Shown: positions 89 through 53,970, counted from the first letter of the stretch. The stretch is 54,069 nucleotides of DNA from Bugula neritina (GCA_964035545.1 CAXIUT010000057.1:209185-263253); one strand, 5' to 3'. Notes: generated from the letters alone by a model not told the origin. A program made the numbers and translations.

Positions 89-198
89 CTATTGATAGAA
101 AATAAAATAGTAATAACTCAATACTAATATTGGATAGATAGTCATAAGATATCCATTTATTTCTAAGTTTAGCCTGTTTCTGCAGTTTATTTAAAGCA

Positions 199-853
199 TC
201 AACAACCTAATTCTAATACTTCGCTCTCAAAACTAAGTTTCCTGAATGGATATTTTCCATTCCTCTCTTCCCAAAGAATAATACTAAATCCAGAATTAAC
301 CTTATTCTCACTCTTAGTACTAGTCTTATGAAAATACTCCTTTATCTGATCCTCAACTCCCCTCTCGAAACAAATGATCTTTTGCCAGTAAATTTTCATC
401 TATTGGAACTTTCCTCACTATCTCCTGCACCTAGGGCTGGTTCAAAAAATCAATATCCAGATTTTTAGAATTAACACTAAATATCTTATCGATCTGCTTC
501 TTCAAATCTGATAACTAGTTCTTACTTTCAAGAACTAACATGATTTTTGAGACAGTTTTTTTGAGAAGGAGCCAAAAATATCAAACACCTCAAATCACCA
601 ATATACTTAGTATAATTGGGAAAGTTAGAATACAGCTAAAAATCAAAATTGATATCCAAATCCAATGTACTAACATAGTAAATCCAAAAGTATACCTTTT
701 CTGATAGACCACCAACAACCCAGAACAATTCTATTGCCATTACTCTTGGATCGATATGTATAAACATCTTGGTCTAGTGACGAAAAGGACAGTTCTCCCG
801 TCTTTGTTGAATCTGAACTGCAGCTACTTTTATAGCAGTGGGTCTATTTTCAT
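199..853 (-). CDS. Hypothetical protein (probable tiny intron, frame uncertain)
   Basis: ATG at 853 opens MKIDPLLEKELQFRFNKDGRTVLFV under TAR=Glu; ends ...EVLELGC-TGA; no family recognised. Confidence 0.4.
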
Positions 854-1216
854 ATTATTAGTTAATTTGAAATGTTATTATAGTGTTATTGAATATAAAC
901 CATTCGATTCATCACTATTAAGTTAATTTTAGAAGTGCTGTTTTTATTCTTATCTCAGTCCCAAAAGAGTCACTATGGTTGCTGTTTTCTTTTAAGAGAG
1001 GCAGAGAAAGAATTCACAGGGTTTTGGAGGTAGACCCATCTAGGATTGGATTGTTCTAAGATATAAAACAAATTAAAAAAGGGATAATTTGGGTGAAAAC
1101 TTGATATTTATGAGTTTGAGTTGGATTAGTTGTTGTATTGATGTAAAGTGAGTATAATTCTGGTCCATTCCGAGTGAAATGGACTTTGAAGGTTAATAAA
1201 ATCAATTAGAGTCAAG

Positions 1217-4020
1217 ATGGGATTATAGTGTGCTAAGGTGGCTCGCAGAGGTCCTGAATTCATCGATGCCATCAAAGTAGACGAACTATAGTCTGAACTT
1301 AAAAATGTCAAGGATGTCACCAAGATAGATCTCACCCTCGCAGCACTCAAACTAATTAACTTCCACCAAGTACCCCATCCCCTCATCCAGACTTTCCACA
1401 TCATTAGAATACAGGTCCCCAGGGTAGTTCTCGATAGATGTCTCCTCTAACTAGTTCTAAAAACACGACAAAATCTGGAATGTAAGTTTTCCTTAAAAAA
1501 GTCCGACAAATAGTGCAAAGCAGTTATCCAGGCTCCTCTTTCTGAGATGTCATAAAAAATGTTGAAGATTCAGATGTTAGACAAGACAGGTAAGGTTCTT
1601 GACTAGTTAAAGATGAAGCTATATCATTTATCGACAGGTCCAGTCAAGCACGACCACCTTTTGAAAAACCTAAAATCTAGATTATTATTTGAATGCAAAA
1701 TAGAACAATACCTAGATATCTAGGTATCAGTGAACGACTGGAACATAATCTGGAAAAACCCTTCAAACTATTCCTAATAATCCTACAGTTTATCTCTGAT
1801 AGTAAAATAGAAATTAACATAGTTTTCAAATATAAATAAGCATGTAGACGTAATAAAACAATTCGAAAAGCACTAGAAAATAAAAACGATTCGGTTGGAT
1901 AAAATATCTCTACCTCATAGCTAAATGCTATAATCTATTATCAGAATTAAAATGACTATTTTAGGATTTAAGAACACCATCTCGAATTTTATGTCCCCTA
2001 CTCTAAAATCATACAACTATCTACCTACAAACAAATCAATACCAATGACGGAGTCTACTAGAACCGCTAGTTCAAACAAAAACTAGTCCATCATGATCGA
2101 AGGGTAAGAAGTGGGATCGATTAGCTTTAATTTGGAGTTTAGAAAATCTAGATTAATATCTAGAACAAATGGATTGTGTCATTTTCAGCTAAAATGGTAT
2201 TGTTATGACCACAGAAACAGATCTCTAGAGCAGATAGTGGGAACTTAGTCTTGATATCATGCAAGGATACCTCAAAGATTAAAAACTGGTAAAGCTTATG
2301 GATTTGAGTGATTATGATTTCTGTAAAACTATGGATGATCTTTGCGTAGTACTTCAAGAAGGGAAATAATTCAGAATAGCTGATAACTTATTTTATACTC
2401 AATAGGTGCTACTATAATTCTTTTAGAAATGTAGTAGTGTATTGACTAGGACTAAATAGTTAAAAATAATTACATTTGGAAGATATTCCATTTGATTCTT
2501 CATAAAAAAGTCATGGATTTAAGACATTTCGGAAGCATCAGAGACAGTGTTCATCAAAAAAGCTATGCTCTTAAATATTATACCTTTCTTGTTAGAAACT
2601 CTTTCTAAAATAGTTAGATTCATCATGAATGGAATCAGCTTCAATAACTAGTATCTATTCAGAGATTCGTTGCATATACATTCTTTAGATTTCCATGGTG
2701 CCAGAATTAGATTTTACAGGCATTGAAGAAGGAAGTGATCCTGTTCTCAGTTAAGATAAAATAGCATAGATCGGAGCCAGTTCTCAAGTCCGCAGTCCAA
2801 GCAAATCCTACAATCTACGACTGGTAAGCCAGCGTCTACAACTTAGTAAAACGATAGTAATAGTTCAAGCAACCCTAGCAAAGCTATAAAAAATAACAAG
2901 AGACAACCATAAATGGGCAGGTCTTCTCTTCGACAGATAGTACTAACAACTATTCTACGGTTTGTACTCATAGCTATGGGACGAGGCCTAGATTTTCCTT
3001 TCCATGGCGGTCGCATTTTATGGTAATACTTTCCTAGATACGGATAGCTCTTATCATATTTTTTGGTGAGATGAATGCCAGTGGTATCCTTGATTTTAGT
3101 GCATAGATGACTCGCTGCAATATGAAGTTGATAAAAAATTAAAAATTACTCAACACTTTCATGATGCTTATCTTTCCCAAAACCTGTCTTTATGAAACCT
3201 ACTCAGTACTGAAATGTTTGGATTTGATCAGCTGCTATTTCGAGGTAATTCTCAGCAAAAACAAAAAGATCCCCCACGATTTCCACTACAATTACTTCTA
3301 CTCAGGCATCAGATGCATCTTGTAGTCAGACCACTCTTTCTTCTTCAAAAGGTATATATAAATAGTAATATAGATGCTATCAATATTATATAAATATTAT
3401 GCAATATTTACCAAAGAGTTTAAGGAGACATTAAACCACTATATTCTTTGCCATGCGTTTAATCAGTTGTTTTTTACATTGGAACTATAGCGTAAGAAAT
3501 GTATTTCATCTTTTACTGATCTTCAAGATAATCAAAATAGAAAATAGTATAAAACAATCCATAGTTAATTAAAAGTCAAAGTACTTTTAACCATCATGAA
3601 CAAAAATTAAACTACTAAGCTGTCATGGATCACATCCTCACTCTTAGAGAGCTACACGTCTAAAATAAAAAGTATAAGGTCAATCATAAATTAGCCTATC
3701 ACTAAAAAATGAAAGTTCAATTAGTATAAAAAAGAAAAAAATATCTCATGTATAACTATGCCAGTAGTCCCTAGAAATTCATAGAATAGTCCAATGAAAT
3801 TAAGACAAAATAGTTTTTAGTATGATTTTAGTCCAATTATAGTTAAAAGAAATGGAGTGTAACTAATAGCATTGAAGATGATCGACCCATCCCAACTAAA
3901 CAATAAACTAAATACTTATCAGTATCGCTTAAATAATTTGATTAGGCTAAAAAGATTAAAGATCCTGATACCATCGTTGATAATGACAGCAAAATGCTAC
4001 AAGTTAATATTGACCAATGA
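1217..4020 (+). CDS. DUF1765-like protein, possibly N-acylated
   Basis: Starts MGLECAKVARRG; C-terminal region KIPHDFHYNYFYSGIRCILESDH...FNQLFLHWNYSVRNVFHLLL resembles the DUF1765 F-x-H-W-x-x-x-V-R-x-x-F-H motif; TGA at 4018-4020. Confidence 0.65.
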
Positions 4021-4060
4021 TTGCCTAATAGTTTATTTATTTAGAATATCTTATACCATA

Positions 4061-4300
4061 TAGATAGTATAGATAGTATAGAGAGCTAGAGATAGCTAGA
4101 GATAGCTAGAGATAGTATATATAGTTAGAGATAGCTAGAGATTAGTATAGATAGCTAGAGATAGCTAGAGATAGTATATATAGTTATTAGATTGTAAAAG
4201 ATAGTATATATAGTTATTAGATTGTAAAAGATAGTATATATAGTTATTAGATTGTAAAAGATAGTATATAGTTATTAGATTGTAAAAGATAGTATAGATA
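4061..4300. repeat. Compound minisatellite: 10-bp GATAGCTAGA units, then a 30-bp ATAGTATATATAGTTATTAGATTGTAAAAG unit x3 plus a 28-bp variant
   Basis: Exact 30-bp copies at 4171, 4201 and 4231; variant at 4261. Confidence 0.92.
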
Positions 4301-4499
4301 GATATGTATCGTATGTATAGTTATAGGTAGTTATTGTGGAATTGATAGGTATGAAGATTATAAAGACAGGAATATAATCAATGATGTTTATTAGTTGCCC
4401 TCGATGAATAGTTTGCAGTTTTTGGTTTCTTTTACGGCTACTATAAATTATCTATTCACTGAATACGATCCTGGCCGGGATAGTAATTATGCGGGCAAT

Positions 4500-5068: not shown

Positions 5069-5160
5069 TTAGGAATCAATAAAATTATAGAAGTCGATTA
5101 TCCTCAAATGCAATAATCAAAAATAGTAAAAATAAGAGAAATGACCTCATGATCATCTAG

Positions 5161-11183: not shown

Positions 11184-11277
11184 TCCCAACCCCAACCCCA
11201 ACCCCAACCCCAACCCCAACCCCAACCCCAACCCCAACCCCAACCCCAACCCCAACCCCAACCCCAACCCCAACCCC
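11184..11277 (+). repeat. Internal telomeric tract (CCCCAA) x ~15
   Basis: Perfect C4A2 repeats between two divergent genes. Confidence 0.97.
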
Positions 11278-11345
11278 TCAGAAAGGGTCATAATAATATC
11301 AATAGATATACTTCTCAAAATATATTTGAATAATTTTTAAAATTA

Positions 11346-14300
11346 ATGAAAAGCGAGTACATAAAAAACCACATCAATCTCAAAGCCACTCCAAGGCAGC
11401 CAACTAGTCCCACCTAGCAAGAATAACCCTTCATTTCAAAGCCATCCAAGAAGACAACGATCCCACTACTTGGGCAAAATTCTAATCAGAACTACAGATA
11501 GCAAAGAATCATAGAGAACTAAAAGCCAAAGACAAAGAGCCCATCTTCAAATGTACAATAAATATGATTTAGATTTGGTTGAAAGAAACGTCAAAAATTT
11601 TTATTTCCTAAAAGAACACAGAAACATCGAATTGAGACTCCTAAAATCGACTAAAACTCAACTAGAAGGATACTAGCTAGATTGGAAACAAATATGGAAA
11701 AATCTGCAAACCTAATTTCCATAGTTACCATCAGTTAAATTATACAACGAGCTGACAGATTTCTTGAAAGTCATCCGTCATCTCTACAACCCAGACAACG
11801 CACTATAAGTAACAAACTATTTCATTCAACATCATTCTCTTTATACTGACAACTTATACAACTACATTTCTATGTTTGTGAATACAAATAAAAAAACAGA
11901 TCGGTCGTATCAGAAGGAATATCTCGATCGATTGATCCAACTGTATCACATGAACCAGTTGAAAGCCAGTGATTTGCTGGTGATGTATATCAATGCGACA
12001 AAATACCATTCATTTGAGGTAGATTAGAATATCCATAAGGAATTGAATAAGATAATATTGTATTCTTTGTCTGTTCCTAGCAATGATAAGAAATAATCAA
12101 TTTAGTCTAAATTTAGTACACAAACTGCCAATATCATCTTCAGAATTATTGGAAAATGTAACAAATAATCAGAATATCTACTCTAACAGGTCTTTCAGCT
12201 GATGAAACATTTTATCAGACCATTTTAAGATTCTAAAAAACCTTTGAAGTTGCTGTGTCTGTTTATTATGGGAATAAGTAAAAGAATAGATGCCTAATAA
12301 GGCTACAGAAACAAAATATAGAAATTGAAAAAGAAAGAACAATAAAGAATATCAAAATAACTAAACAAAAAATAAAACAAAATATAAGAGCCATAAAGTT
12401 AACATACAGTTGCATAGTCAAAACCAAAATAAAAACATAGCGAAGAATAGTAATAATCAGATGAAGATGAATAGCAGTAGGATTCCGATGACGATGGCGA
12501 CAACAAGATGGATAAATTGATAACAATGTAGTTATAGTTATAATAGAACATTTCTTAACAAAATTCTAATCAAAAGAAAATAGATAAGTATGAATTGTTG
12601 CTTAGAAATTAAATAACTATAGAAATTAAATAAATTATCAGAAAGTTTATAACTACGAATCTTTAGTTTATTTTTTATGTTAATAGTAAAAAAATGGTAA
12701 GTCGTATTTTAAAGAGAAGTATTTAAGTTGTTTCCAGAATTGGTTGTTAAATCTCTTTAGGTTCTTTAGAAAGCAGGCAATATTCCTCAAATCAACTAAG
12801 ATGGATTGATAAATAATATCTAACACATAGCTAAACACTTATTTACTAGAACATTGATAGACAAAGGTTAATTTCTTGAACATATGCTCAAAGTGCTAGC
12901 TAGAGTAAAAGAAGCAAGAAGAATAACTGATGTTTGGACGATTATCAATGCTTTCGTTATCAAGATACCTTTACTAGATGAAAAAGATATAGAAGAAGTT
13001 CCATAAAATCAAAAATAAGCATTCTAAAAGAAATACAATCAAAATTACAATAGATTTTATGAAATTACAGTGATGATATATTCTAATGCGTCAAAAGACT
13101 ATTCTAGTAGAGTCAATACTATGATTTAAATGGAAGCACCAATGTCGATCACTACATCATGGAGGTATTAGGCAATAGTTATCCTAGATTTAGAAAGCGA
13201 GTGCTAAGAGAAATATAAGAAAATATTTTATAAAACAATAATAAATTTTTATTGAGTATTTTCCATTCTGGAATCAGACCATCTAAAAACTTCTAACTCT
13301 CCTTGCGACAAATGATATAAAATGGCAACATAGAAAGCTAAGATAACATGAATTTGGACATCAGTGTGAATGGTATCCTCAGTATCGACATGGACCATAT
13401 CATAAATAAAAAAACTTGATAAGAAAGTATAGTAAAAAGAACAATTATAAATTTTTGAGACAATCTATGGCTAGTTTGACTAATTTCAACATCAATTGCT
13501 AGCCTTTGAGATCAGATCTTGATTATTTGGATAATAAACCTTAGTTGAAATTGGAACAAGAACCTCCTTTTGATTTGATATCTGATAAAATGAAACATGT
13601 GCATAGCTACATGTATGAGTTGGTTGACTAGTTGCATGAATGTTTGAAAGAATTTTAAGAACAGCCTTTGAGATAATTGTAATATTCTGTGTTAGTTTAA
13701 CAATGCTATAAATCAAAAGATAATGATTTCAAAAATATGAAAGTATAGAAAAGAAAAACTATCAATGAATTGCTTTAAATCATCCGGAATATTAGCTAAC
13801 ATCTTTTCCATTAATTTTAATACTACAATCCTCAGACAAATACCATCTAATTTAAATAAGCTCCATATAAGAGGTAATCTCTCTTGAAAAATGATAAATT
13901 CATTACTAGTATACACTCGATAGTCTACAACTAACTGTTTTTGCATGATCATAATATAATGAACAACCTCTCAACTTTACTATAGACTGAAATATTCTTT
14001 ATGTACAGACATCAGTTAAGACTGTAAAAGCAAGTATTGAAGAAATACATGAGAAAGAATGCAAAATAATAACTCAAAGGATAAAGCAATCTCACATATA
14101 TCAATAACATCCTTATAGGTAAAGCAAGAATCGCTCATTATTCTCTTTTAGTCAACACCTACAGAGATTCAGTATAGATATAATGCATAAAAGATATACT
14201 AAAGATCCTTCTGATCGCACCAGGCAATGAAAGCATGAACACAATCCATAAGATAATATTCAAAAAATCATAAAATCTATCCTCAGATATCAACCTGATA

Positions 14301-16639
14301 ATCCAACTACTATCGAAATCAATAAATTCAAGATTCTATTACTAAAAAGTATTTAGTCTCCTCTCTGACACCCTCAATTCTGGCTGCAAATTTACTTCTC
14401 AACAAATAATCGATATCATATCATCTCACATTCCTTTAATTCAATCCTAGAACATAAAAATTAAATAACAATCATTAAGATCACTTGAAAGATACATGAA
14501 AACTATGTATAAAGATGACTTCTATGGTTTTGTTTAGAATAAGTTAAGATAATATACCAAAAAAGATAAATTGGAGCTAGTGTGGATTATTTCTGTGCTA
14601 GTTATTATCAAATAAAGTAGAAATGATACACCCATTGATGACTATTTGCAATCTATTAGATAGTATCTTAAAGAATTGGAAAAATTGATTGTATCTGATA
14701 TCAGAATCGTACGTAGAATTGCCTTATTTGCGTATTCATTTTGTATCAAAAGAGCAAAATAAACAGTCAAAGTATATTAATAAAAATAATGCTAAACTGT
14801 TAAATACTAAAAACCTAAAAGTATACTATAATTATATAAAAATGGATTTCTCAGATAATAGCATATAAATAGAAAAGATCTATCAAATAAAGAAGTTTTA
14901 AAGAAACTAAGTCCATATTCAACATACAAAACAAAAACTTATCTCGATAACTAAACCTATAAACTAATCTAACAATAATCTTTCGCATTTATGCTAGAAA
15001 ATCATGAACTATCAATCAAAATACTAAAACAATTTCACACCGATATGGCTGCTTCAGTCGAGCAGGTAATCTCTATGCTTCACAACAAGAAACATGACCT
15101 GAGTGAGATAGCTGTTCGATCATTGTAGGGGTGTTTTGTTTATGCCAAATTGTAGAAATTACATTTCGATCGATTTTAGAATCAATTCGGGTAGTCTTTT
15201 TTCAAATATCTTCTTATGAAAGATGCAAGTATATTTATATTTATTTAGAATGCTATCAATTTGGGTTCTTTAGAGCTAGTAAAGGATAAATATAAGCTTT
15301 GCTGGTCAATTTGTAAGCCTATGATAATCAAACTTTAATCATGATCTATCTCAACGATATCTTAGCTGCTTATGATAAACATAGATAAGATCTTTCAGAA
15401 TAAGTTCGAGGATAAGTTGAAGCCTTTATTTAAAAAATAATATCTTAGATGTTGTTTAAAGGTTCAGGAACTCTTTTCAAACCTTTGCTGATCTTGATTG
15501 GGCGCTTTAAGGCTCGTTAATCTTTAGGTTTCTTATAAAAGTATTTAAATTCTTTGATACTTAAAAAGTAAAAGGTATCAAGAGCATCTCAAATGCTTTT
15601 CATTTTGGCCTAAGATAACTATACTCTTTATACTGATATAGCCAAATTTTTATTAAATTAAAAGATCTAGATAAACCACAACTATATATTAACTCTTTTC
15701 AACTCAATCATATCACTTCCTGAAAAGTACATGCTTACTGACAAATAAATAAAAACATACAATATAGTTGATCTCTAGAAATAAAAATCTAACCAATCTA
15801 TTCAAAAGTTTATCCACTAATAGATATATCTACCCAAAACAAATTAATTTAATGAGACATTAATCGCTTATCTGAAGAAATATATCTCTTTTATAAATGT
15901 TTCTGATTAAGAACAACCAAATACTCATAAAAATTAACTGATTAAAGCTACATATAACATCACTACTTCATCTATTACTACTTTTAGTCAGTTCTTTTAG
16001 ACCTAAGAAACTTCAGCTATCATTCTTGAACTTTTAGAAATTATGTTCCAGCTTTTTGAGTGCAAAATGGAGTTAATGATAGATTATAAACAGCTATAAG
16101 ATACTATTAGGTTTGTAATAGGAAACAAACATGACTTTATCGATAACTTTGAGAAAGTACTTGATGTTATAATCAAATATATCCCCAAACTACCAATGAA
16201 AAAACAAGCAGATATTATCAAAATCATCAGCAATCGACCTGGCAACTTCAAATTCATCTCCCAGAAATACTACCAACAATTCATAACAACTCTCCTGGTC
16301 TTCTAATAAAATTCAATGATATACAAAGATTTACTGATCAGTCTTTCAACTCTTCTCGCCTATGTACCTCTTTCTTTGTCTGAAATATAAAAGATAGCAT
16401 CAGAAGCGAGTAAAGGTCAGGCCTTGTTGCTTCTGCAAGCGTATGTAATGGCAACTGAAGACATAGCTAGTAAATATGTTGATAGGATATTATCTGATAG
16501 TTCAAGATAGAGAAGAAACTTGTTTTGTAAGTAGATGTTACAACTCAGAGGGAAGAAGTAGTATTTAGATGATGAGAATAGATACGAGTAGTGGAAGGAG
16601 ATTAAACAGTTCTCCAATCCTTATCATTATCATGCTTGA
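11346..16639 (+). CDS. Very large (~1700 aa) helical hypothetical protein with an acidic patch
   Basis: Long open reading under TAR=Glu from MKSEYIKNHINLK to ...FSNPYHYHA-TGA; several small introns and possible indels; could be more than one gene. Confidence 0.55.
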
Positions 16640-17479: not shown

Positions 17480-17815
17480 TATTCCTTCATTATCATTCTT
17501 AATTAAAAATCATTTATTGATTTTTATTTATCAAAAACACTCAAAAAGAGAGATTATCATCTTATAATCTTTGTCTACTATTCATAGACTTTCAAAATAA
17601 TCAAGAAGATCTATGTTAAGTATCAAACAAAAATAATCTAAAATTTTTAATTGATAACTATCTATTCATATAACTATTTCATATTAACATATTTCTTTGT
17701 TTTTATCTTTAATTATAAACTAATTAACCTTATTCTATTAATGTTTGATGTTTTATTATCATATAACACTGGCTTTTATTTTTGGGCGTCGGATAGTATA
17801 ATAATATTTCGAAGA

Positions 17816-19315
17816 ATGTCGAATCACTCACTAGTGATCTTTCTTGTTCTCATAATAGCAACTACAAGTTTTACTTTTCAAGGCAACTGGACTCTAGTCG
17901 ATGCAGGTTTCCAGCAAGAAGGATAAAAGATTTAACTATAAGTGTCAGAGTTCATCTTCAGAGAACAGAGTATCATCCAGAAGTTAAGTTTCAAAGGATG
18001 TTAGTAAATGTTACTACAAGCAAAAGTTCAAAAGAACTAGATCTATATCAATCCCAGCACTTTCCTTTCTCGACCAATTGAAGGAAAATCATGTATTTTT
18101 ACTAATAACCCTCTCAATCTAATATTCTCAAAGCTATCAAAAGTTTTTTTCTTTGAAATAAACATAGATCGACTCGTATTTAAAAGTCCAATAGGTATCT
18201 CTCTTCTCTCCTTCAAAAGAAAAACTATCAGATAACCTATAAATATCAGCGGAATTTGGAATATGGTTCAATATGCTAACATAAAAACAGCTCTTTCTAT
18301 CTAAGCCAGCTAAAACTAACTAAGATTTTGCCAAGGAAAAGCCATATTCACTTATTAAATAGTAGACAGACGCAAAATAAAACTATCTAAAGTTATCAAT
18401 ACCTGTCCTTCATAAAAGCTAGTTGACACTGTAGAATCAGTCAAATTTTACCGCAAAAAAGGTACAATACTATACCTATACAACGAATAAGTAGATCAAA
18501 TAATCACAATGATATATCGCTAATAATACAACCAATAATAATCAATTTTCAAACCAAAAGAACCAACAATTCCTCAACAACCAAAACAACCAATATCAAC
18601 AAACAACCTCCAAGGCAACTGGACAATAAAATCGTTATTCAGCATTCCATTTCCCAACACCCCATATTATCTATAGTTCAAGTAAGAATCAATAGTTCTT
18701 CATGGTGGCTGCAATATCCATAACTTTGGATATGCTCTTACTGCGCCTACTCAAATTATCGAGGTAGGAGTAGGTGTTTCAACTCTAAGGTTATGTGGTG
18801 AAAGTGATGATCAACTCTATGTGTCAGGTCTTTAGAAATTGTATAAGTATTTGTTGAGTAATAGCAGTACTAGATATACTTTGAATACTTTTGATAAAAA
18901 TGGTAAACCTCTATATTAACTCTATATGAATAAAAATAATACAAATAGAGGAGTAACTAGATCGGTTGTTAAGAGAAAACCCAATCCTTTTGCACCTGGG
19001 ACCATGTTGATGCTACTTTTATAGAAAAGAAGTTTACCAAGAAAGATAGTGAAAGTGACATCAAATATATTAACTTTTAATTTGTGTAATAGCTATAAAT
19101 ATACATTTACAATTGATTCTCCTGAAGCAAATGAAGGAACAATCAAACTAGCTGGCAACTCATAAACTTAAAAAGCATGTGTTGATTCAAACGATCAAGT
19201 ATATTAAAGAATATTAGGTTCTGTATAAAGTTATGTGTTCAATGACAGAAACAATGTGATTATTTTGAAAGATGCCAATGATAATTAAGTTGTAAGTCTG
19301 AGTCGAACTGGGTGA
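17816..19315 (+). CDS. Secreted protein with four tandem META/HslJ-like domains
   Basis: Uninterrupted 499-aa frame; signal peptide MSNHSLVIFLVLIIATTS; repeats open with FQGNWTLV, ISGIWNMV and LQGNWTIK; HGGCN...STLRLC and LCN...ETEKAC match META GCN...STxMAC. Confidence 0.7.
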
Positions 19316-26530: not shown

Positions 26531-26558
26531 TTTTAATATAACATCATCCATCTAGAAT

Positions 26559-26633
26559 CCAACCCCAACCCCCAACCCCAACCCCAACCCCAACCCCAAC
26601 CCCAACCCCAACCCCAACCCCAACCCCAACCCC
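26559..26633 (+). repeat. Internal telomeric tract (CCCCAA) x ~12
   Basis: C4A2 repeats (one C5 unit) between the convergent Rab8 and proteasome genes. Confidence 0.97.
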
Positions 26634-26697
26634 ATATCTAGTCGTATTTAATAAGTTAATGCCATAATATAAATGAATACAAGATAACGATATTCTA

Positions 26698-30741: not shown

Positions 30742-32239
<1,498 letters not shown>

Positions 32240-32354
32240 AATTTAAAAACTATTTAGATTAATATCAATAGTAATTAATAACTCACATTATCCACTCAAT
32301 AAATAATAACCATCAAATATATTAAAACTCGATATAAAGCATAACCATATTCTA

Positions 32355-33071
32355 TCAGCAACATCTCTTCTTTTGTATATTTTGATGAATCGACTAGTTA
32401 TTAATAACGATAGGTTCATTTTATAGGTCAGCTGTTTCTTACTATCGTTTCTTATTCGATACTACACTCTCGAACATCTTCTTCTATAATTCTATAAAAT
32501 GACATATATTAATACCTTCAGCTACTCTTTCAAAAATAAGATCAATATTCGTTCCATCTTTAGCAGATACCTCATAAAACGGCAATTATCTCTGCTATGC
32601 AAATTCCATTCCTTTTTACGTGCTCACCTTTCGATCATTTTAAAGATCGATTTTATTTCCCACAATCATAGTTACCACATCTTCTCCGACAAATTCCCCT
32701 AAAATAGTCTTTATTTCATACTCATTGTTTTAATTTATCTTTATAGACTAGTAAATGTATCTTCTCGAGTGATGTCGTAGACTATTAGAGCAGCCTCAGA
32801 ACGTTTATAAAAGACTTTCATAAGAGATCTTTGTAATAAGAAGAATACTTGTATTTTTATTGATCTGCTGTATCCCAGATATTCAATTTTATTTTAGTTC
32901 CCTTTTTAGTAGTTACAGTTTTAGTGGCATATTACACTCCTATTGTAGTTTGCCAATCAGTTGAAAACTTATCCATTGTATATTTCAACAAAATATTTGA
33001 CTTGCCAACTGCAGACAACCCAAAAGGATGATTTTATAAGTCTAGCATTCTTATTTTTTTGGTGAAGACAT
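32355..33071 (-). CDS. Divergent Rab GTPase (Rab11/Rab2-related), tandem copy A
   Basis: KIILLG.SAVGKSNILL...TTIGVEYATK...IWDTADQEKY...GNKIDL...YEVSAKDG...KRCC-TGA; three tiny introns; one homopolymer frameshift. Confidence 0.88.
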
Positions 33072-38813: not shown

Positions 38814-40035
38814 TCAGGCATTACTGCAATCAAGACATAATTTCTTATGATTAGCTTTGATAACAACATATCTTTTCTTCATACATTTCTAACATAATTT
38901 ATCTTTTTAGATCTAGGCGCTGGGCTACCACCACTTCTTCCCTCCCATATCATTTCCAACTAAAGAAGTATAAAAATTAGCATTTCTTTTGCAATCATGA
39001 TCATGAACCATCACCGATTGTTTCATAGTCCTCGCAAAATCTTTATTTGTCTCAAGCAATTTATTCTTAGGAGCTGATGTATGCTTATTACGCCGATGAT
39101 TATGGACTACTTCTGGCAAAACTTTTAGCAAAAACTTAACTACCTAGGATCAAATCGCTACATAAAACATATTTTGCAATGCTTCTATTATTTATTATTC
39201 AATTATTTATTCATTATGCTTTCATTTGCAATCCAACTAGAACAAATTATACATCTACTCCTCAGATCTTTCTTTAGACCAACTTATATCTTCATATTCT
39301 AGACTCTTATCTAAACAGAATGCTTCGAGGTAATTTTTAATTTCTTATTACCACCATTATCATCCTTAGATTCGCTTTATGGGATTTAAAATGCACTTAA
39401 CCTGCTGACAACAGAGATATCTTACTGCTAGGATGGATCTTAAATTTCTAAGGAATTTAATTGTGCATTTATTTACTTTTGATATCTTTCTATGATAATT
39501 TAGAACGATCTATTTTTTTATTCTAAATATTATTTCTTATTTTAGGCTAGCTTTTTTAATATTTAATATTTTATTCCATACTACTTTGCGTAATGGCACA
39601 ATCTCTACACATAACAAATTCCATATTTTATATAAAATTCAAAGTTCTAATAATTCGATTACAACTAACACACTAGAACAAAAACCCCTCATATTTTTTA
39701 GCACAATAATCATAACAACAACGACACAACTTCATCCCCTCTCTCATCTATATATCCACCGCCCCATCTATCTTATTCCCACAATTGATGCAATGCAACA
39801 TAATAAACTCCTCCACCACGATCCGGTCCACATAGTGTCCGCAGTATAGCTCGATTATTATGTCCTATTGCTGGTTGAGATAGTAACTCTGGTAAATTTG
39901 GATGATACAACGCGGACAGTAAACGGACTTGCAAATTGGTTATTATAGTTTCTAGGAGTTTATGATTAGTTTATAACAGTTTTTGCATCTTAAAGTGCTA
40001 AGGCTGTATTGAGGGTAACTGTATTGAGTGTTCAT
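38814..40035 (-). CDS. Cys-rich multi-zinc-finger protein
   Basis: CKNC...CKSVYCPRC...CGH; CINC...CRCC; CVSC...CRDC; C-terminal CEKC...CLDC-SNA-TGA. Confidence 0.6.
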
Positions 40036-40071
40036 TATTAATTTATATATTGTTATAAATATCTTATAAGG

Positions 40072-43000
40072 TCAATATATGTTGAACCTGAAACAGTAGT
40101 ATTCCACCATGCGCTATGATTTGACGCCCAGCAAAACCGTCTCAACTCCCATCGCTTCATTCTAGATAATATGTTATAAATTGAATAAAAGTTGGATTTT
40201 CTTTTACCCCTTCGCTTCGACCTGAAATCCACTGTCTCCGCTTTTGGTCCATAAAATAGTAGAATTACTGGTGAATAATTTAAATTATGATTTCTTGTTG
40301 ATAGGACTTCTATAGACAAATGGCTCTTCTACTACTTTGTGATTAGATGAACGACTGATATTTATTTTTAAATTCTATTTTATCTGAGGAGTTCTGGTCT
40401 ACAAACATAAGACCATCCGATATACAGGCATAAATTATTTGAATTGATTCGATGATAAACACTACTGCTGCTATAGTACATCTCTAGCCTCGATGAGGTT
40501 GATATTGACATGATTGACGCCTATTTTCGATGGCACGATATGACAATAAAAATCTATAAACTTTTTATCTTTTGGCAATTTGAATAATTCAGGTTGCTAT
40601 GCTTTGTGTTGGGTTTTTGATATTTTGACCAAAGCTGGATTATCAGGAATCAAATAGAAATAATTAGTTGATAGCAAGTGTTGGAATAATTTTGTTTATA
40701 CTTTGAATGGCTACTATTTATCCATCCAGAGATCGCCTTTTGCTTATAGTTTATGACTTCCCCAGATTTTTATGTTTATGTTTAGCAGAGGCGGACCATG
40801 GTGTACTCGCTACATGTACTATACTCTACTCTTCATCCTTGATTTCTATACTACCCGCTATTTCTAGTTATTAACTCTTTATCCAGATTTCTACTTAACG
40901 TTATTGACTACAATCAAATTAACCTCCTTGCATTTCTGCCTCTAAATTTTACTCCCAATTTCAAGCAAAACACCTCTCCCCTGAGCAACCAACTCCCTCC
41001 TTTATGTCACTGCTTCAACCATACTCCCTCTCACCACCACAAAAGGATCATCAACAATCACCTGGTCAATCATCCCCTCCAAATACTACGATTATATAAA
41101 AGGCAAATGAATTAGAGCCGGCTCATCATTAGGTCGATAATATTACAACTAAATCAGATTGTAATTTATTGATGGAATGATCTCGATGTTGTAGATTGAT
41201 TCTATTGTATTTTTTTTAGAATTTATCAATGAACATGAAATAGTGCGTCTACTATTATATATTGATGGATTAGTATTATGCTAATTCTAACTGTATTTTC
41301 TAATAGAAAAATAACACAATAGAACATATCTTTTTTATTTCCCAAATAACTAAACAACATTATTATGACCAACTTTCACCAATCTACTTATCTTATCCTC
41401 ATATTTCTTAACCATCAACAACTTCTACCTGTCCTCTCGATCCAACATTCCAAAATCCTTCACAATCGACAACTACTACTCACTAACAGAATTGCTTTTC
41501 AGATGGATATCATCAGGATCATTGATATTTAGCTGGTATTCAGTTGAATGTTAGTACTTGTTTGTTACTTGTAGGAAAAAGAAGTGTTTTTTCAGAGGAG
41601 TTGAGGATAGAGTGGTGGTTTATTCTTGGTATTTTTGGGTTAAGTGGGGCGGCATCTTCTTCTATTGGGTGATTTGGGATTATTATGGTCGGTTTAATTT
41701 TTTTGGACTTGATCTACGGGTTTTTGAGGATTTGAATTTTTATATTCTTTGCTTTATTCTTTTGGTTTAGGTCTATTCCTTTGCTATTTCAGATTATTGC
41801 ATCTAATTTGATATCAAAGATCGTTATAGTATTGAATGTCCTTGTTCTTTTTTATTTCTATTTTTCATTTTTCTAATAGCTCTAATCTAGACTCTAACTT
41901 TCCCTTTTCTTCCTCCTCCTTTGACCAAATTCTCCTAAAAAACAACAACCGCTTAATTTCTTTTTTTTCTGACCAAATTTCTCAAAGCCAAATACACCAC
42001 TCCGAAGACAAACCCCCCACAATAGTCAACCATCTCGACTTTAACCAATCCATTATACATATACTAAACAAACTGCATAAAATCAAATTAGCAACTTTAA
42101 TGTTAAAATCCAATTTCCAAATGCATAATTTTATTTTATTTTTACCCCTTAGCATCAAATAGCACAATTTCACCCGTATCGTGGTTCATAGTCAATAGCT
42201 AGGATCTGATTTAAGGGTAGTTGAATAATTTTAATTTGAAATAAAAGATCTATGGATACTTATATTACATTTCGTCAATAGTCGGGACTATATTTTGGAA
42301 ATTTATAAAATAGCAGTTATTGTAGTTTATTTATGAGAGCTATGTGCGGAGTAGCTAGAGGGGAAGAGGTTAGTATAGATAGTAACTTTGGTTGTGAGTG
42401 TATGTTGCTGTGGAGTTGAGGTGGTAGAAGATGTAGGGCAGGGAGAGGTGTTAGTAGGCTAGTCTATGAGGTTGTTTTGATAGTTTTAGCATGTAGTATC
42501 TAGGTGGTTAGATTGTTTATTATTGTCTGTTTTGATGGTTTATGATTGATGATTTCGTTTATGGTAGATATTGTTTGATATAAGATAGCAGTTCTTCCTA
42601 TCTGTATATTTTAGATATTTTAGATTGTTTGGCTGTTACTGATTTGATCTATCCTTTCTGCTTATCACTTATAGCTACTTTCTAATAAAACTAAATCCCC
42701 ATTTTTCTAACTACCACAACTTTCTTAGTCTATCTGATAATCCTCTCTTTTTCTGCTACGATTTTATCTCTCACATCACCTTTCGACAAATTCATACTAA
42801 AATTATCCATATTAATCGACACATTCTAAACTATAGCTATATACTCTCGCTCGCCCAAATGCATCTCGAATTATATCATGCCCAACTCATGCACCTTCTT
42901 CAAACTCAAATGAGTTCTATTCGATATTGTCTTTATCGATTTAGCTATAGAGACGTTATCAAGTTCTGTATCTTTTTTCATTGTTTTGTGATGTCGCTAC

Positions 43001-44425
43001 TATGGCTGGTAACTTTGAAGAGCATTGCAACTTTTAGCCAACATCTCTATGATATCTTTCTTTGATGTTAGCGGACATCCAGCATGTAACTTCATTGACT
43101 GGAAACGATGTATTTTCAATGTTTTTGCTGATATTATGCCATAACATATCGGCAACTATATCTTTTACTTTCTCATCTCAACATCTTTATACTCTATATT
43201 CGCATCAATAACTGCCATGATTTGTACGATCAGTACTGACTCCTCTTCCCCTGGAAACACCAAACCTAACTATATATTCTTCTATACGATATACCCACGA
43301 TTCTCCACAACTTTTTTACTATCAAAATCATGTAACTTAATAATGGACAAATTCTCCTTACTTCGATTTCTAGCCAACCCAGAACCCAAACTATTATTAG
43401 TCTGCACCCTCTGATTATCTTTTTATTTCATAACAGCCGTATCAGAACTAACCATCTTCCACCCATTATGAAATCCCACTCTAACTGATAACTCCCTCCC
43501 AGCATATGCTATCTTCTTAGAGTCGCAAAAAAGATGTTTGGTGTAGTTTTAACATCTGCTTTATATTTACTTTAGAAGGAGGGAACTCAACTCAATGTGA
43601 GAGAATTGAAGGAGTATGCTCTGGGCTTATGGCGTGATTGCGAAGTCGGAAAGGGCGTGTTCGTTTATTGGAAGATAGCCGCCCATTATTCCCTAGATGC
43701 GGTCGTTGCAGTTGCAGATAGTGTTGGCAGGGATAAGTCGTTCTGATATTACCAAAGGGAGTACATAGGTATTTGTAATGCTCTGATTTCACCAAACTGA
43801 CATACCCATAAGCACCCTTCATCTAGTGCTTACCATCCAGATCGAACAAATTCAAATCTCCACCACTGACAAGTTTTCTCTTCTCTTTGCTTTTGATCTC
43901 CTTGCGAAATGAAACCTCCATCACTCCGATCATCTCAGGAGCTTAATTGATCTACACTCCTTAGCCTACTTGCACCTACTAGTTGAGAGATACTTCTATT
44001 CTTAACAACAAATTTTAGTCATTGCTGGTATACAAGTAGTAACAGATACTTTCTGGCATCTAGAACAAATCATGCGTCCCTTCTTCAGCAGTTTTGTAAT
44101 TCATAGCTGTTTTAGGGTAAATCCTTCCTGTTTGACTATTAACTAAATATGCTCTTATTCTCACTCCTATTTTAGAATAGCTATGAACCCGTCTAAAATG
44201 CATATGCGCCAATCCATCCAACTTGACAACATAGTATCCATACTACCCATGATCACTATCAATTCCCACCATACAATTCCGATACCTTTTCTATGCCCAC
44301 CTGGCCACCTGCCCCAACTCCTCAACTCGCTCAACGAAGTCATTATTAGGCAGTGCGTCAGTAACGGATATGTAGTCTATTTAAGAGTGCTAGGTTCTGA
44401 TTTTAGAGTTTTATAGTTCTTGCAT
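40072..44425 (-). CDS. NPHP4: Nephrocystin-4-like ciliary transition-zone protein (~1400 aa)
   Basis: LIPANTICNCNDRIEGI and RELSVRVGFHNGW resemble NPHP4 LLPENVLV...IPGL and RRLRVGVHNG; C-terminal GVNHVNINLIE and YRSPINKKSEFKLFTS...FQVEAKGEKKIQLLF...EYYCFRFNIY-TGA resemble the NPHP4 end; several indels or introns. Confidence 0.75.
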
Positions 44426-44458
44426 AATCATAATTTAAATTAAATTATCATAATTATA

Positions 44459-45334
44459 TCAATGTTCCTGATCGAAGTTAAAAAAACTTTTACGAAGAAC
44501 CTTCGGATTAGAATTATCTGAAGCCACCTTTGGCCTGCTCTCGAAGATGCGACTGCGACGGGATTGACCCATCTAATTTCGAGATTACGTCATGCGATCG
44601 ACTATCACATTCTTATCCTCCAAAATATATATCCTTTGCAATAGATGTTTCAATCCCTATATCTTCTACCTATCAACTCTGACTCCCCTAACTCCACTAC
44701 TGAGTTGGTGATTATAATTTCTAGTCTACTATTTAATCTATCTAACTATGGTATTGTAATCCCTCAGAACAACTTCAGCTATACTTTTTCTATACTACTG
44801 TTATGATCCATTCAAAGACGTCAGCAACCTTTGTATCTATGAATCGATATTCATAATTTTATGATGAATATTTATATATTCCTTTGGTATTTTATCTTTG
44901 TAATTTTTTAATGACTCAATCGCCATGTTCTTATTGATCTATAACATCTAGCCTACGATACCCAATACGTGCTGTCTCAACTATTGATGCTCCTGCTCAA
45001 ATCGAATAACCAGATTATTTAGATAGTTATTTATATTATCTTCGATACTTCTTTACTATTTTTTGAATTACTAGCGAATCGATAATAAAAATTTCTAGCA
45101 TTATGAGCGAGACATCTGGAAGTTGCTGTTTTGATAGGTATTGTAAGTTATGGTTAGAGGTTAGTATTGGGTTTGTAGGTATTGTTTGGATGGCTATGGA
45201 TAAAAACCCATCTATGTTCGTAGTTTTTGAGGTTTTAGTTTTGGCTACATTTTAGGCATGACTGATGATGTTGAAAATCCATAGTTATGCTAGTATTTGC
45301 GAAGAAGAGAATCTAAATCCAACCGTTGCTTCAT
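44459..45334 (-). CDS. Hypothetical coiled-coil protein
   Basis: MKQRLDLDSLLRKYEHNYG... to ...FNFDQEH-TGA. Confidence 0.5.
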
Positions 45335-45428
45335 CAATATTCAAATATTATGATATCTATCAATTATAGCTATCCAATCAAAATGATGATAATATTTATG
45401 ATATTTAATTTAAAAGAACAAAGCTAAG

Positions 45429-46350
45429 ATGAATAGATTATTTACTGGTCATTTCGATTATCCTAAAAGTCTCTATAATTAAATAACGTTATCGGGCTGA
45501 AATAATTGATGCATAACCTTCGTATATCAATAGCCGATAAGCAAGACGACCTGACAACCCAACACACCATCAGGACATCCGACTCCCCACCCACAAGTCC
45601 AAAACATCAACTATAAACAATAAGTTCTCTCAATAAAATCTTCACAATTCTTCATAAAAAAATAAAAAACAAAAAACGATATACCATGCAAATAGTAAAA
45701 CAATTTTTTATCTACCCATAATCATCACCACAATCCAGTGTTATCAGTGTGTCGAGATATGATCCTTTGATTTTTAGTGATTAGAAATTACATACTTTGG
45801 TCAAAATTATGGAAACTCAAAGAATCACCAAAAAAATATGGGGATTCGTCAATCTAAAAACTAATAGAAAATAACAACTGATTCTATAAGGCGTCCATGG
45901 GTTGCATAAAGTCACGAAGGAAGTACAATTCTTCTATAAAAAATAAAGTTTTAATAGAATTATCCAACAATCAAACCTCATAATCTACCCTGTTATAAAC
46001 AATATAGCTAAATAACAAATATAAACAGTAGCAGAATAACCTAAAATTACTATAAATAAGAGTAGATTACATCAACACCCACTCTACGACATAACAATTG
46101 ACAAATCAACTCCATAGCGATGCGCAAATGAAAGCAGATAAACCATGTATAAACTGGAGACCAACATAACCAAGAGAACAGTCGCATAATCATAAAAATA
46201 AACTATGTACGAACACTATAAATAAAGATCATAAAAAAGTTATTTTTGTTGTCATAATTCTTGTTGCTGCTGTGCGATCAATGATCCATTATGGTAACGT
46301 ATTCAATATCTAAAACAACTGTAAATGATGGCATTGTAAAGAAACATGAA
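45429..46350 (+). CDS. Hypothetical low-complexity protein
   Basis: MNRLFTGHFDYPKS...; frame interrupted; Cys-rich end. Confidence 0.3.
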
Positions 46351-46357
46351 ATGATTT

Positions 46358-46425
46358 TTATCTAGTTATATGTTATTTATATGTTATTTATATGTTATAT
46401 TTATGATATATTTATGATATGATTT
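46358..46425. repeat. Degenerate AT-rich tandem repeat (TATGTTATTTA / TATGATATATT)
   Basis: About five 11-12 bp imperfect units. Confidence 0.6.
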
Positions 46426-46478
46426 CTTCTTTAGCAGATATTCTATTAATATTTAACAAGCGTATAGAACATCAAACA

Positions 46479-47408
46479 ATGGAAAGCAACCATAAATTAT
46501 ACCAACTGGCATATTAATATTCCACCTACACCCGCAATAAAAACATCACCTACCGACCATCTTTCTCACCCCTCCCAGCATTCATCCACGAAGAAGAACA
46601 AACAGATACCCCACAAAATATATTTTTCAATCACAAACAACACAGACTATAAAGTGTACCCAGTAATAGCTACTAAATAGTCGGATCAAAAGAAATGAAA
46701 ACCTATGTAGCCAGGCAATAAAAAAAACAAAGAAGTAGATTGAATACTCTAGCGAAAAGATCAACCTAGTCAGCTATATCGCTGTCGAGGGTGTCAATGG
46801 GAGCAAGTAGAACCAATCAAGAACGGTACTATAATAAAGATGAGTTGATGCAGAGTTATACTACTGTTGGAAGAGAAAACAAGATAGCAGATGAGGAATA
46901 TATTACTTAGTAACAAAGTAAATATCTGACTCAAAATACAACTATTATCAATACGACTATGGGCAATAACACATCTTTCGGCCAGGTCAAGAAATACGGC
47001 GGTAAAGACTTTAGTGTGAAGAAGGTGGTTGGGAGGATGAGACGCTACGAGAAAGAATGGAAGAAGTTGAAATAAAATAGCTAGAATTTAAGAAAGAAGA
47101 ATAAATATAAAATAGAATCTATACTTAATAATACCTAAAATTTTAGAGATAAAGTATAAGATCTAGAAGGAAATTAAGTTGTTGAACAGAGAGAGAATAT
47201 ATCGCCCAAATTGTGGAATAGAGCTTTGAGGACGTCCCAAACTATGGTAAATCTTAGCCATAAAAATGTACAACATGTTGGGAGAAGATTTAACAATGTT
47301 GGAAGAAGTAAATTTGGGAAAGAAGCTCAGTGGGTGTAAGAAAAAGATAGGCAGGGACATTTCTTCAGACCTTAAACCAAATAAAATAGAATATATCGAT
47401 TCAGTTGA
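46479..47408 (+). CDS. Hypothetical protein (309 aa, intronless)
   Basis: Clean frame MESNHKLYQLAYEYSTY... to ...RIYRFS-TGA under TAR=Glu. Confidence 0.7.
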
Positions 47409-47438
47409 TCACTTTTTAGATTATCTATCACATTATCA

Positions 47439-49368: not shown

Positions 49369-49392
49369 AAATAAATAAACAATAACATAATA

Positions 49393-51595: not shown

Positions 51596-51639
51596 TTAAA
51601 TAATAATATAGTAGTTAAATAACTCTATAATTAATCATG

Positions 51640-52165
51640 ACAATCCGAAATATTCAGTATTGTTCCAATTGTGTTGATTATCACATTCCTCAAAGATATT
51701 TCGCATCTCATGCACCTACTCATGTTTCTAATCGATCATACACATATCTAACTTGACCTATGAAAAAAATGCCTCTTTGCTCTACTACCATTCTTCCTAC
51801 TAGGATTAGCAAGTCGGCCGCTCTGTGAGAATCAGTTTGGTGCTATAGAGATGCAGTCTTGAGGAAATTTATTCGTGGGATAGAGTTTTGAGGTCTTCGG
51901 TCTAGGGGCAGATCTTTGACATTTAGGAGTAGAGGTCGTAGGGTTGGTTTGATACTACTTTATGCAGGATCTTTGTTAGATAAAATAGTACTGTTTGTTC
52001 TTGGGTTTTTGTTAGTTGTCGGGCCTGTTGGGGTGTCATTCGAGGCAGTTCATGGGCTAGGTGTGCGAGATGTGGGTTGTTTGATGAGCAGGTTCTGAGA
52101 GTGAGTGATTGGGCTGAGGAGGAAAGGTAGTCTTTGATGGATGTTGGGATTTGCCACTAGCTCAT
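51640..52165 (-). CDS. Hypothetical protein
   Basis: MSEWQIPTSIKDYLSSSAQSL...; 3' end uncertain. Confidence 0.4.
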
Positions 52166-52370
52166 TCTAACGAATACTAATAATTATATTATATCCTTTT
52201 TTTATATCTACTAAAATCATCAACTTTTATTCCTAAATTTTGAATAAATCAAAATAATTTTTATTCTATTTTCAGAGATGACTAGATAACAAAAATATGC
52301 ATTTTAATCATATTTTTCAATTATCATAATTAGTCTGAACTATTATTGTAATAGAAGAAATATAGAAGAA

Positions 52371-53908
52371 ATGAGCATAAAACCATCTCGAATAACTCGT
52401 TGTTCAATAAATGGATTTCCAACTAACATAGCCATGATCCTCAACTCTCCAAACTATTCATCTCAATCGACTATAAACAGACTGACTGATAATAGTCGCT
52501 CACAACCAATGAAGATGAATAAACCTAAATCAAGAGAAAGTTATTCAAAAAAATACTAATTGTCTAAATTTGGATAAAAGAATCATAACCAGTCATCTAT
52601 TTCATTGAATATTGAAAACATAAATCCAAAAGGTAGATAAAATGATGATGGCTATTAGAATAAATATGATTGTGATTAGACGATTGATAAGACAAGGTTG
52701 GTCAAGAAGATGTCATGTTTTGGTTTATAAAAGAAAAAAGATCGACCGATTAGTCAACAAAAATAGTTAAGAGAAACAATAGATTATTCGTTAATTAATA
52801 AAAATAGAAGAGAACCAGGATTGAAAAGTACTTATTCGACTAGTAATCTTCATAAAAGGACATCAGCTTTTGTCCCAAAACCATCGTTTTATAAATAAGT
52901 AGAATAAACTTCATTAATTATCGAACCAACTTTGATTAAAATAAAATCTTAATAATCTTAAACTAAACAATGGGAAAGTAAGATACCAAGAAAGAGTTTT
53001 AATGATCAAATAATAGATATAGGTAAATAAAATAGAAGATCAATTACTCCTAGAAAATTATCATTTTTTAAAAATAGAAAACTTCGTTATCTCTGAAAGA
53101 TTTCATTTTAGGTAAGTGTTTAGGATAAGGAAGATTTGGCACTGTATATCATGCTGTCCATAAGTTGACTTTATGGAATGTAGCTATCAAAAAAATAAAG
53201 AAAGAATCGATCAAATTCATCATTCCTCAGTTTATCAATGAGTTAAAAGTTCAATTTTATCTTAACCATCCCAATATTACCAAAATATATGCCTTTTTCT
53301 GTGATTAGTAACATTTCTATCTAGTACTATAGTATATGTAACAAGGTTCTCTTTACAAACACATCAAAGATCGTAAAAACTTATCATAAGACGAAACCAA
53401 AGTCAAATTGAACCAAGTATGCCAAGCTCTAAACTACATGCACGACCTAAACGTTCTACATCGCGACATAAAACCTGAAAACATAGTCTTGAGCCATGTA
53501 CTTAGTTAAATCTATTCAGGATGTTTGCAAGTTATGCGATTTTAGTTGGAGTGTTTGCAGTACAGGGCGTCGTTCAACTTGTTGTGGTACCTTGGATTAT
53601 GTTTGCCCATAAATAGTATCAGGATAATCTTATAACAAAGAGATTGATGTCTGGGCTGTGGGAGTGTTGGTGTTTGAGATGTTGACGGGAAGGCCACCTT
53701 TTTATCATATTAGTCGGAATCAGACTAAAAACAATATTCAGAATGTAATTATAAAGAGATTTAGTGTTAATTTTAAATACCTTAAAAGATATCTTAGGAA
53801 GGAAAAAAGTTAATATTGAAGATATTGAAGAAAAATGGAGAAGTTTAGATAAGGGAATTGTTGGATGATTAGTTTTTTAGGAAAATTGATCGAAGTTATC
53901 TATTGTGA
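52371..53908 (+). CDS. Aurora-like Ser/Thr kinase with long disordered N-terminus
   Basis: DFILGKCLGEGRFGTVY...VAIKK...LNHPNI...YLVLEY...HRDIKPENI...KLCDFSWSV...RRSTCCGTLDYVCPEIV...IDVWAVG...GRPPF. Confidence 0.9.
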
Positions 53909-53970
53909 TATCTTCTATAATATCTATAAAAATAATATTTACAAACAATTTATATTAAAACAAAATAAAT

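Follow-up and report, generated by a model that had tools for sequence, protein, structure and literature searches.

The 54,069-nt stretch of DNA analysed here in full (the window) comes from the Bugula neritina assembly GCA_964035545.1 (CAXIUT010000057.1:209185-263253; G000:C66:209185-263253 in our numbering) and consists of a mosaic of C-rich and G-rich blocks. The original prediction made on this DNA had described the mosaic as a regular oscillation of the plus strand, alternating every 0.5-0.8 kb, running through genes of either orientation and phased to the telomere sites, and had ascribed it to a recurring mutational landmark. The interpretation that we favour, with a little more confidence than doubt, is that the blocks represent a gene-referenced strand asymmetry made of three additive layers and not a periodic DNA-processing landmark. 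In the first layer, each gene would be C-rich over the first ~250 nt and G-rich over the last ~250 nt of its own coding strand. In the second, the strong blocks inside long genes would follow the make-up of the encoded protein. In the third, a nucleotide-level bias with a reach of ~100-150 nt would pull synonymous choices toward the surrounding sequence. The statistical signal of each of the three layers was directly observed.

The window corresponds to a complete macronuclear chromosome, from telomere to telomere, of a peritrich-like ciliate that contaminates the animal assembly. It has a G+C content of 32%, opens with C4A2 repeats, closes with G4T2 repeats and bears two internal C4A2 tracts (11185-11279 and 26542-26638). 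Its open reading frames (ORFs) are long only when TGA is taken as the sole stop codon, and TAA and TAG occur in them at 36 and 24 per 1000 codons, respectively, together accounting for ~6% of the codons. When these two codons are read as Gln, the predicted proteins contain only 3.4% Glu and 9.3% Gln, while reading them as Glu brings Glu to ~9.4%. Since the Glu content is normal only under the latter reading, the sequence appears to favour the peritrich code. A further 187 kb from other chromosomes of the same ciliate served as comparison set. Gene statistics were based on 94 TGA-free ORFs of at least 250 codons from the window and the other loci, each with its own frame scoring best of six under a weak codon model, and the telomere tracts were masked before the skew statistics were computed. 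The window DNA is single-copy in the assembly. Allelic or paralogous copies were therefore dropped as a source for a substitution spectrum, the region being present only once.

The heterogeneity of the GC skew, (G-C)/(G+C), was evident at every scale examined. The variance of the binomial z-scores for G versus C was 3.4 in 100-nt windows and 5.0-5.4 in 300-500-nt windows, compared with 1.0 after label permutation, and it exceeded 2 in each 6-kb stretch of the window, with a peak at 36-48 kb. A maximal-segment scan identified 38 strongly skewed non-telomeric segments (36-329 nt, median 110 nt) covering 9.6% of the window, whereas local shuffles yielded about one C-rich and one G-rich strong segment each. 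The 14 blocks listed in the original prediction all carry the claimed sign, the binomial p values ranging between 4e-2 and 4e-15 for those of the 40-44 kb gene and between 3e-2 and 1e-4 for those of the 11.3-16.6 kb gene. The claim that blocks occur within single genes of both orientations was also confirmed, as they were found inside single long TGA-free ORFs on either strand.

As a description of the skew, the original prediction was thus right about heterogeneity (variance 3.4-5.4 times binomial), partly right about telomere phasing, and wrong about regular oscillation. Neither the autocorrelation nor the spectrum had a peak beyond controls that would correspond to a 0.5-0.8 kb alternation. 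In 50-nt bins, the autocorrelation of the window was positive to ~150 nt, dipped into a weakly negative lobe between 200 and 350 nt (minimum -0.098) and was flat otherwise. The spectrum of the window skew displayed a plateau above ~350 nt with a corner near 300-350 nt and no peak. The negative lobe was due to the 39-46 kb region alone (-0.20 to -0.32 at 200-350 nt; ~0 elsewhere in the window), and no such lobe was found in the other 187 kb. The spacing of the strong switch points was irregular, ranging from 0.4 to 16.5 kb. The alternating region is the following:

39000-46000, no strand assigned: true C-rich/G-rich alternation, the sole such part of the window according to the autocorrelation, with 12 of the 38 strong segments.

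The first layer is found at the ends of genes. Over the 94 ORFs, the third-position skew of the coding strand was -0.15 and -0.13 at codons 30-90 and +0.21 in the final 30 codons. Without any gene model, 42 of 54 AT-rich troughs, which are putative spacers, had a G-rich plus strand on their left and a C-rich one on their right. With gene orientation at the troughs inferred from AT skew, the coding-strand skew over ~250 nt was -0.07 to -0.13 at 56 inferred 5' ends and +0.09 to +0.19 at 66 inferred 3' ends. On either strand, the succession of a C-rich bin and a G-rich bin 50-250 nt downstream exceeded the reverse order by 0.12-0.17 ± 0.025, and this C-to-G polarity was much weaker within long ORFs. 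The AT skew of the coding strand stayed within +0.13 to +0.18 whether windows were C-rich, middle or G-rich. The flanks of long ORFs had a skew of -0.03 to +0.11, and the spacers, which are shorter than 100 nt and adjoin gene starts that are only approximate, were roughly unskewed.

A profile that changes sign from 5'-C to 3'-G is invariant under reverse complementation, and its independence of gene orientation is therefore automatic. All genes would read C-rich on the left and G-rich on the right of the plus strand, and spacers, chromosome ends and telomere-addition tracts located in spacers would become G-to-C switches. The premise of the original prediction, according to which a transcription-linked skew keeps a single sign per gene, was mistaken, as the measured profile changes sign between the 5' and the 3' end. 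Within 100 nt of a trough were found 28% of the strong G-to-C switches, 14% of random positions and 3% of the C-to-G switches. The anticipated enrichment of switch points at intergenic positions is thus real, with G-to-C switches twice as frequent as random positions near AT-rich spacers and C-to-G switches avoiding them. A recurring strand-symmetric landmark does exist, in the form of the C-to-G polarity and of the switches at spacers, but not as anything beyond gene boundaries: the landmark is the gene boundary. Besides these gene-end profiles, the mean third-position GC skew differed strongly among the 94 ORFs (variance 0.085, true standard deviation estimated at ~0.26), and these between-gene differences made up about half of the non-binomial variance.

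Owing to their location in spacers, telomeres and telomere-addition tracts are in phase with the gene boundaries. In the window, the corresponding features are:

1-89, no strand assigned: left telomere, C4A2 repeats, read directly (segment with no G and 58 C).
90-689, plus strand: subtelomeric zone, C-rich on the C4A2-bearing strand (63 G, 119 C, skew -0.31, p 6e-4), in agreement with the mean of 25 chromosome ends.
11185-11279, no strand assigned: internal C4A2 tract in a spacer, with a skew of -0.26 in the right flank (p 4e-3) and of +0.04, not significant, in the left flank.
26542-26638, no strand assigned: second internal C4A2 tract, neither flank significantly skewed.
53370-53969, plus strand: zone adjoining the right telomere, with a plus-strand excess of G (114 G, 74 C, skew +0.21, p 3e-4).
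53970-54069, no strand assigned: right telomere, G4T2 repeats, read directly.

The claimed phasing was therefore recovered next to both terminal telomeres and on the right of the 11185 tract, but not to the left of either internal tract nor to the right of the 26542 tract, so that, of the six telomere-tract flanks in the window, three have a significant skew. When 25 chromosome ends were read inward on the C4A2-bearing strand, the segment at 100-350 nt had more C than G in 18 cases, more G than C in six and equal numbers in one (pooled skew -0.16, p 0.023). The outermost 100 nt of these 25 ends were AT-rich and had no skew. Telomere phasing is a tendency explained by the terminal genes, and no rule. 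As for the internal tracts themselves, both have the polarity of a left telomere and no N gap, with subtelomere-like AT-rich sequence on their right and ordinary sequence, devoid of a G4T2 cap, on their left. Similar internal C4A2 tracts were seen at three other loci (L003, L010 and L018).

The second layer concerns the blocks located inside genes. The gene regions, patches and segments in question are listed below:

40072-43788, minus strand: TGA-free ORF of 1238 codons, analysed by G and C counts per codon position; it had been labelled NPHP4, an identity that was not verified.
42316-42588, minus strand: strongest in-frame patch, almost G-free at all codon positions (88 C and 12 G on the coding strand), with identical frames in both flanks.
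41571-41649, minus strand: second in-frame patch of ORF 40072-43788, C-rich on the coding strand (29 G and 2 C on the plus strand), with identical frames in both flanks.
18520-18671, plus strand: C/A-rich, G-poor coding-strand patch in ORF 17480-19315 (7 G, 44 C, 69 A, 32 T).
45555-45736, plus strand: C/A-rich coding-strand patch in ORF 45275-46354 (8 G, 52 C, AT skew +0.36).
46522-46643, plus strand: C/A-rich coding-strand patch near the 5' end of ORF 46407-47408, from the maximal-segment scan.
47014-47099 and 47277-47356, plus strand: G/A-rich segments near the 3' end of ORF 46407-47408, from the same scan.
11350-16639, plus strand: gene region with frame changes at candidate tiny introns and weaker alternating blocks (five blocks, skew -0.41 to +0.24).

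In ORF 40072-43788, G-rich stretches with codon periodicity alternate with patches that are G-poor on the coding strand, the frame being the same on either side of the patches. The third-position G:C ratio swings from ~20:3 to 2:22 along this ORF, and just two in-frame pieces free of TAA and TAG, of 41-51 residues, were found in it. The patch at 18520-18671 is likewise bordered by identical frames, and no frame could be called inside it. The reading frame was retained across 5 of 5 patches, and across 9 of 11 with looser calls, the latter having a probability of ~0.001 with random frames. This retention led to the rejection of long introns as an explanation for the patches. A repeat family was rejected as well, as an all-versus-all BLAST of the 38 segments gave a single 21-nt match.

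Base composition and codon structure varied together between the two kinds of blocks. In windows of 50 codons, the chi-square for heterogeneity among codon positions rose from 0.5 in C-rich windows through 1.8 in middle ones to 3.0 in G-rich ones, the low value of the C-rich windows meaning that base composition is nearly equal at all three codon positions. The coding margin climbed with the skew, from 1.2 in C-rich to 12.5 in G-rich windows. C-rich windows were enriched in P, S, T, Q, H and N, and G-rich windows in E, K, R, G, V and D; the respective contents in C-rich versus G-rich windows were 7.0 versus 0.7% for P, 7.9 versus 2.2% for T, 7.4 versus 16.6% for E and 8.8 versus 12.8% for K. 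Taken together, frame retention and composition suggest that the G-poor in-frame patches may be translated linkers or insertions under weak constraint. Patches were found on both DNA strands of the window, and their sign follows the coding strand. No account of intragenic patches of this kind in ciliates was retrieved by a literature search.

Tiny introns were also considered as a strand marker or as block boundaries, and rejected: the motif GTA-N11-A-N2-6-AG had 83 versus 91 matches on the two strands, which is about chance by hand estimate. The sole clear intron candidate of the 11-16 kb gene falls within a block, away from its boundaries. Between positions 3001 and 9000 of the window, 26 such matches were counted on the plus strand and four on the minus strand, their number elsewhere being near the hand-calculated chance level. 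This strand bias suggests that intron-rich plus-strand genes may be present there.

The third layer is found at silent sites, to which the skew extends, as it persists at synonymous positions; the loss of signal there that would have refuted the original prediction did not occur. Third-position skew was the most overdispersed (z variance 3.3, versus 2.2 and 1.66 at first and second positions), and the three positions co-varied (r 0.31-0.41). In two-fold codons, the amino acid sets whether the third position is G or C, and the test was therefore limited to the four-fold families. In 8 of 8 such families, G/(G+C) increased from C-rich to G-rich surroundings, a regional context in which gene ends were not separated. 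The within-ORF dispersion at four-fold sites was 1.25, versus 0.89 ± 0.054 for shuffles, none of 500 of which reached the real value (z = 6.6). All 15 of the synonymous choices tested tracked the surrounding skew when the codon's own neighbours were excluded. From C-rich to G-rich surroundings, AAG for Lys rose from 0.17 to 0.35 and GAR over TAR for Glu from 0.31 to 0.48, while AAC for Asn fell from 0.41 to 0.19 and CTN over TTR for Leu from 0.67 to 0.36.

Codon-shuffled controls, which the original prediction had proposed, set the signal apart from chance: the within-ORF variance was 130 in the real sequences, 71 ± 2.8 after synonymous shuffling and 44 after full codon shuffling. Of the excess within-ORF variance, the synonymous shuffle, which preserves the amino-acid sequence alone, kept 32-35%, a shuffle that took CpG into account 38-41% and one that took all junction dinucleotides into account 53-57%, the last figure being an upper bound because fewer codons are altered by this shuffle. 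In the window and loci L002-L021, the observed/expected ratio (symmetrised odds ratio) was 0.53 for CpG and 1.00 for GpC. In the same DNA, TpG/CpA reached only 1.03 and ApC/GpT 0.80. CpG avoidance was rejected as a full account of the synonymous coupling, as it raised the retained variance merely from 33% to ~40%. The G-versus-C choices at four-fold sites located 1-10 codons apart had a correlation of 0.24 within the same family and of 0.055 ± 0.02 between different families, and the cross-family correlation extended to ~30 codons. At silent sites, G co-varied with T and C with A, which is consistent with a deamination-type asymmetry but is no proof of it. This layer would come partly from CpG avoidance and from reuse of the same codon, and its remainder most likely from a transcription-linked mutational regime. 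For the residual silent-site bias, we infer a mutational origin.

Several points weigh against this three-layered interpretation. The gene-end gradient (about ±0.15) is small beside the block amplitudes (±0.5 to 0.9), the mean gene gradient explains only a few percent of the within-gene variance, and gene orientation explains 8.5% of the bin variance in the window (r-squared 0.085). The skew is not clearly carried into the flanks of genes, unlike in fungi. Among the 113 strong blocks, 87-94 sit where the flank frame could not be called, and at least 45% of the excess variance lies beyond amino acids and junction dinucleotides. Translation of the patches and their relaxed constraint were judged from frame retention and composition alone. 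The gene models are our own, namely TGA-free ORFs with 250 codons or more, scored with a weak codon model, and the orientation at the troughs was taken from AT skew. In a separate observation, the own frame of two TGA-free plus-strand ORFs of the window that exceed 380 codons (31755-33062 and 38861-40009) scored no better than the antisense frame, which means that long ORFs are unreliable where a single stop codon is rare.

The silent-site signal could also be accounted for by regional mutation or repair that is strand-asymmetric and changes sign over 150-300 nt within genes, such as deamination linked to R-loops or polymerase pausing, or a repair polarity tied to nucleosomes, protein differences being then a consequence. 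A regime flipping every 150-300 nt would rewrite silent sites and local amino acids together, and the G-poor patches would be its product and not ordinary linkers; we regard this as rather unlikely. The strongest overdispersion at third positions together with the co-variation of all three, the share of variance found outside amino acids and junction dinucleotides, the correlation of four-fold sites across families and the keto/amino axis (G with T, C with A), which fits deamination, all speak for it. However, the cross-family correlation is small (0.055) and the synonymous signal is largely made of same-codon reuse and CpG context. Moreover, the C-rich patches gain C, beyond a mere loss of G, and the untranslated flanks have little skew. 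To our knowledge, no process is known to flip strand bias tenfold within ~100 nt, which was also counted against such a regime.

The mechanism put forward in the original prediction invoked fixed strand-symmetric mutational landmarks every 0.5-0.8 kb, marking programmed break or internal eliminated sequence (IES) sites, dense replication origins or phased chromatin, around each of which single-stranded exposure with deamination of cytosine would write the skew. The strand-symmetric C-to-G polarity, the enrichment of spacers and chromosome ends in G-to-C switches, the association of G with T and of C with A at four-fold sites, as expected of deamination, and the extension of the effect to synonymous sites agree with it. 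We nevertheless consider it improbable. There is no period, alternation being limited to 39-46 kb, and just 28% of the strong G-to-C switches are close to a spacer. No significant skew was seen left of the two internal tracts or right of the 26542 tract, the symmetry follows automatically from the 5'-C, 3'-G profile of genes, and the sign of a block follows protein composition and codon periodicity. Dense replication initiation in particular found no support: in addition to the missing period, the cumulative skew falls near-monotonically with the blocks of minus-strand genes and has no origin-like V.

A purely protein-level cause, in which charged or folded segments alternate with polar linkers and no nucleotide-level bias exists, was given a still lower probability. 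The large amino-acid contrast between block types is in its favour, as are the fixation of third-position G or C by the amino acid in two-fold codons and the fact that the amino-acid sequence keeps about one third of the excess variance together with a weak negative autocorrelation lobe. Yet synonymous shuffling removes two thirds of the excess (z about 20), and four-fold sites as well as all 15 of the synonymous choices tested still track their context when the codon's own neighbours are left out. As the sole cause, protein make-up is refuted.

Selection for unstructured mRNA, which would separate G and C locally and leave the sign of each block arbitrary, is very doubtful. C-rich patches do fold much more weakly than their synonymous shuffles (-9.4 versus -12.7 kcal/mol), but over 831 windows the mean minimum free energy was -19.98 kcal/mol, compared with -20.19 kcal/mol for synonymous shuffles (t = 1.4), and in moderately G-rich windows folding was slightly stronger than in the shuffles. 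As a global force, selection on mRNA structure is essentially refuted. Finally, chance or a by-eye artefact, suggested by block limits drawn by eye and by the modest significance of the blocks in the 11-16 kb gene, has practically no standing and is refuted by the variance of 3.4-5.4 times binomial, by 38 strong segments where shuffles give about one of each kind and by the similar behaviour of the 187 kb of other chromosomes.

Contig C66 (417,585 nt), of which the window is one piece, is a scaffold of complete ciliate chromosomes, as seen at loci L011, L012, L015, L016, L020 and L021. Each of its junctions consists of a G4T2 tract followed by 200 N and a C4A2 tract. At locus L012, the last ORF before the N gap (L012:2748-6074) and the first one after it (L012:6713-9946) share an identical peptide stretch of at least 35 residues. 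To judge from this peptide, the same gene appears to close one chromosome piece and to open the next. The two copies could be alternative chromosome versions or haplotypes.

The gene-based reading of the skew has a counterpart in unicellular fungi, in which genes begin with an excess of C and finish with an excess of G on the coding strand (PMC3315797). The fungal skew touches four-fold sites and amino-acid usage, is accompanied by a positive AT skew along the gene and extends into promoters and 3' untranslated regions; its cause, mutation or adaptation, was left open (PMC3315797). The 5' C-bias, the 3' G-bias, the effect on four-fold sites and amino-acid usage and the positive AT skew were all matched in the ciliate. 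However, the latter uses TAA and TAG as sense codons and its very short flanks do not clearly carry the skew. It also adds intragenic patches, with an up to tenfold G:C imbalance, which are absent from the description given in the fungal paper. In the nanochromosomes of the spirotrich Halteria, a 3' subtelomeric skew of the coding strand has been described, with reference to earlier work on Oxytricha (Zheng et al. 2021, PMC7858049). The C-rich state of the C4A2-bearing strand at 100-350 nt from most ends resembles it, but here the chromosomes contain multiple genes (54 kb) and the skewed zone starts past the unskewed AT-rich first 100 nt, within gene bodies.

Replication-associated GC skew also involves strand-symmetric sign switches and a co-variation of G with T. 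Its domains would need to be a few hundred nt in size, and neither a period nor a cumulative V was found here. The switch points are tied to spacers and gene bodies, unlike replication-driven domains, which are independent of gene structure. Codon autocorrelation, in which tRNAs are reused along a gene, has reportedly been described as well, by Cannarozzi et al. (2010). It is similar in that nearby codons of the same family share their synonymous choice (0.24 at 1-10 codons); it does not predict the cross-family correlation of 0.055, which runs parallel to the non-synonymous composition.

Gene-end polarity is thus a pattern of a known kind, found here in a new lineage, and the less ordinary part is made of the strong intragenic G-poor patches and of the residual regional bias at silent sites. 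The presence of a 5'-C, 3'-G polarity in a distant alveolate with a reassigned code argues for a general, transcription-linked cause. Such a polarity is by itself sufficient to generate orientation-independent units, and G-to-C switches at all gene boundaries and chromosome ends, which can be mistaken for marks of replication or DNA processing. The regional component at silent sites raises a modest but real question. In ciliates, G-to-C switches and the loss of codon periodicity could aid the annotation of gene boundaries and of weakly constrained segments.

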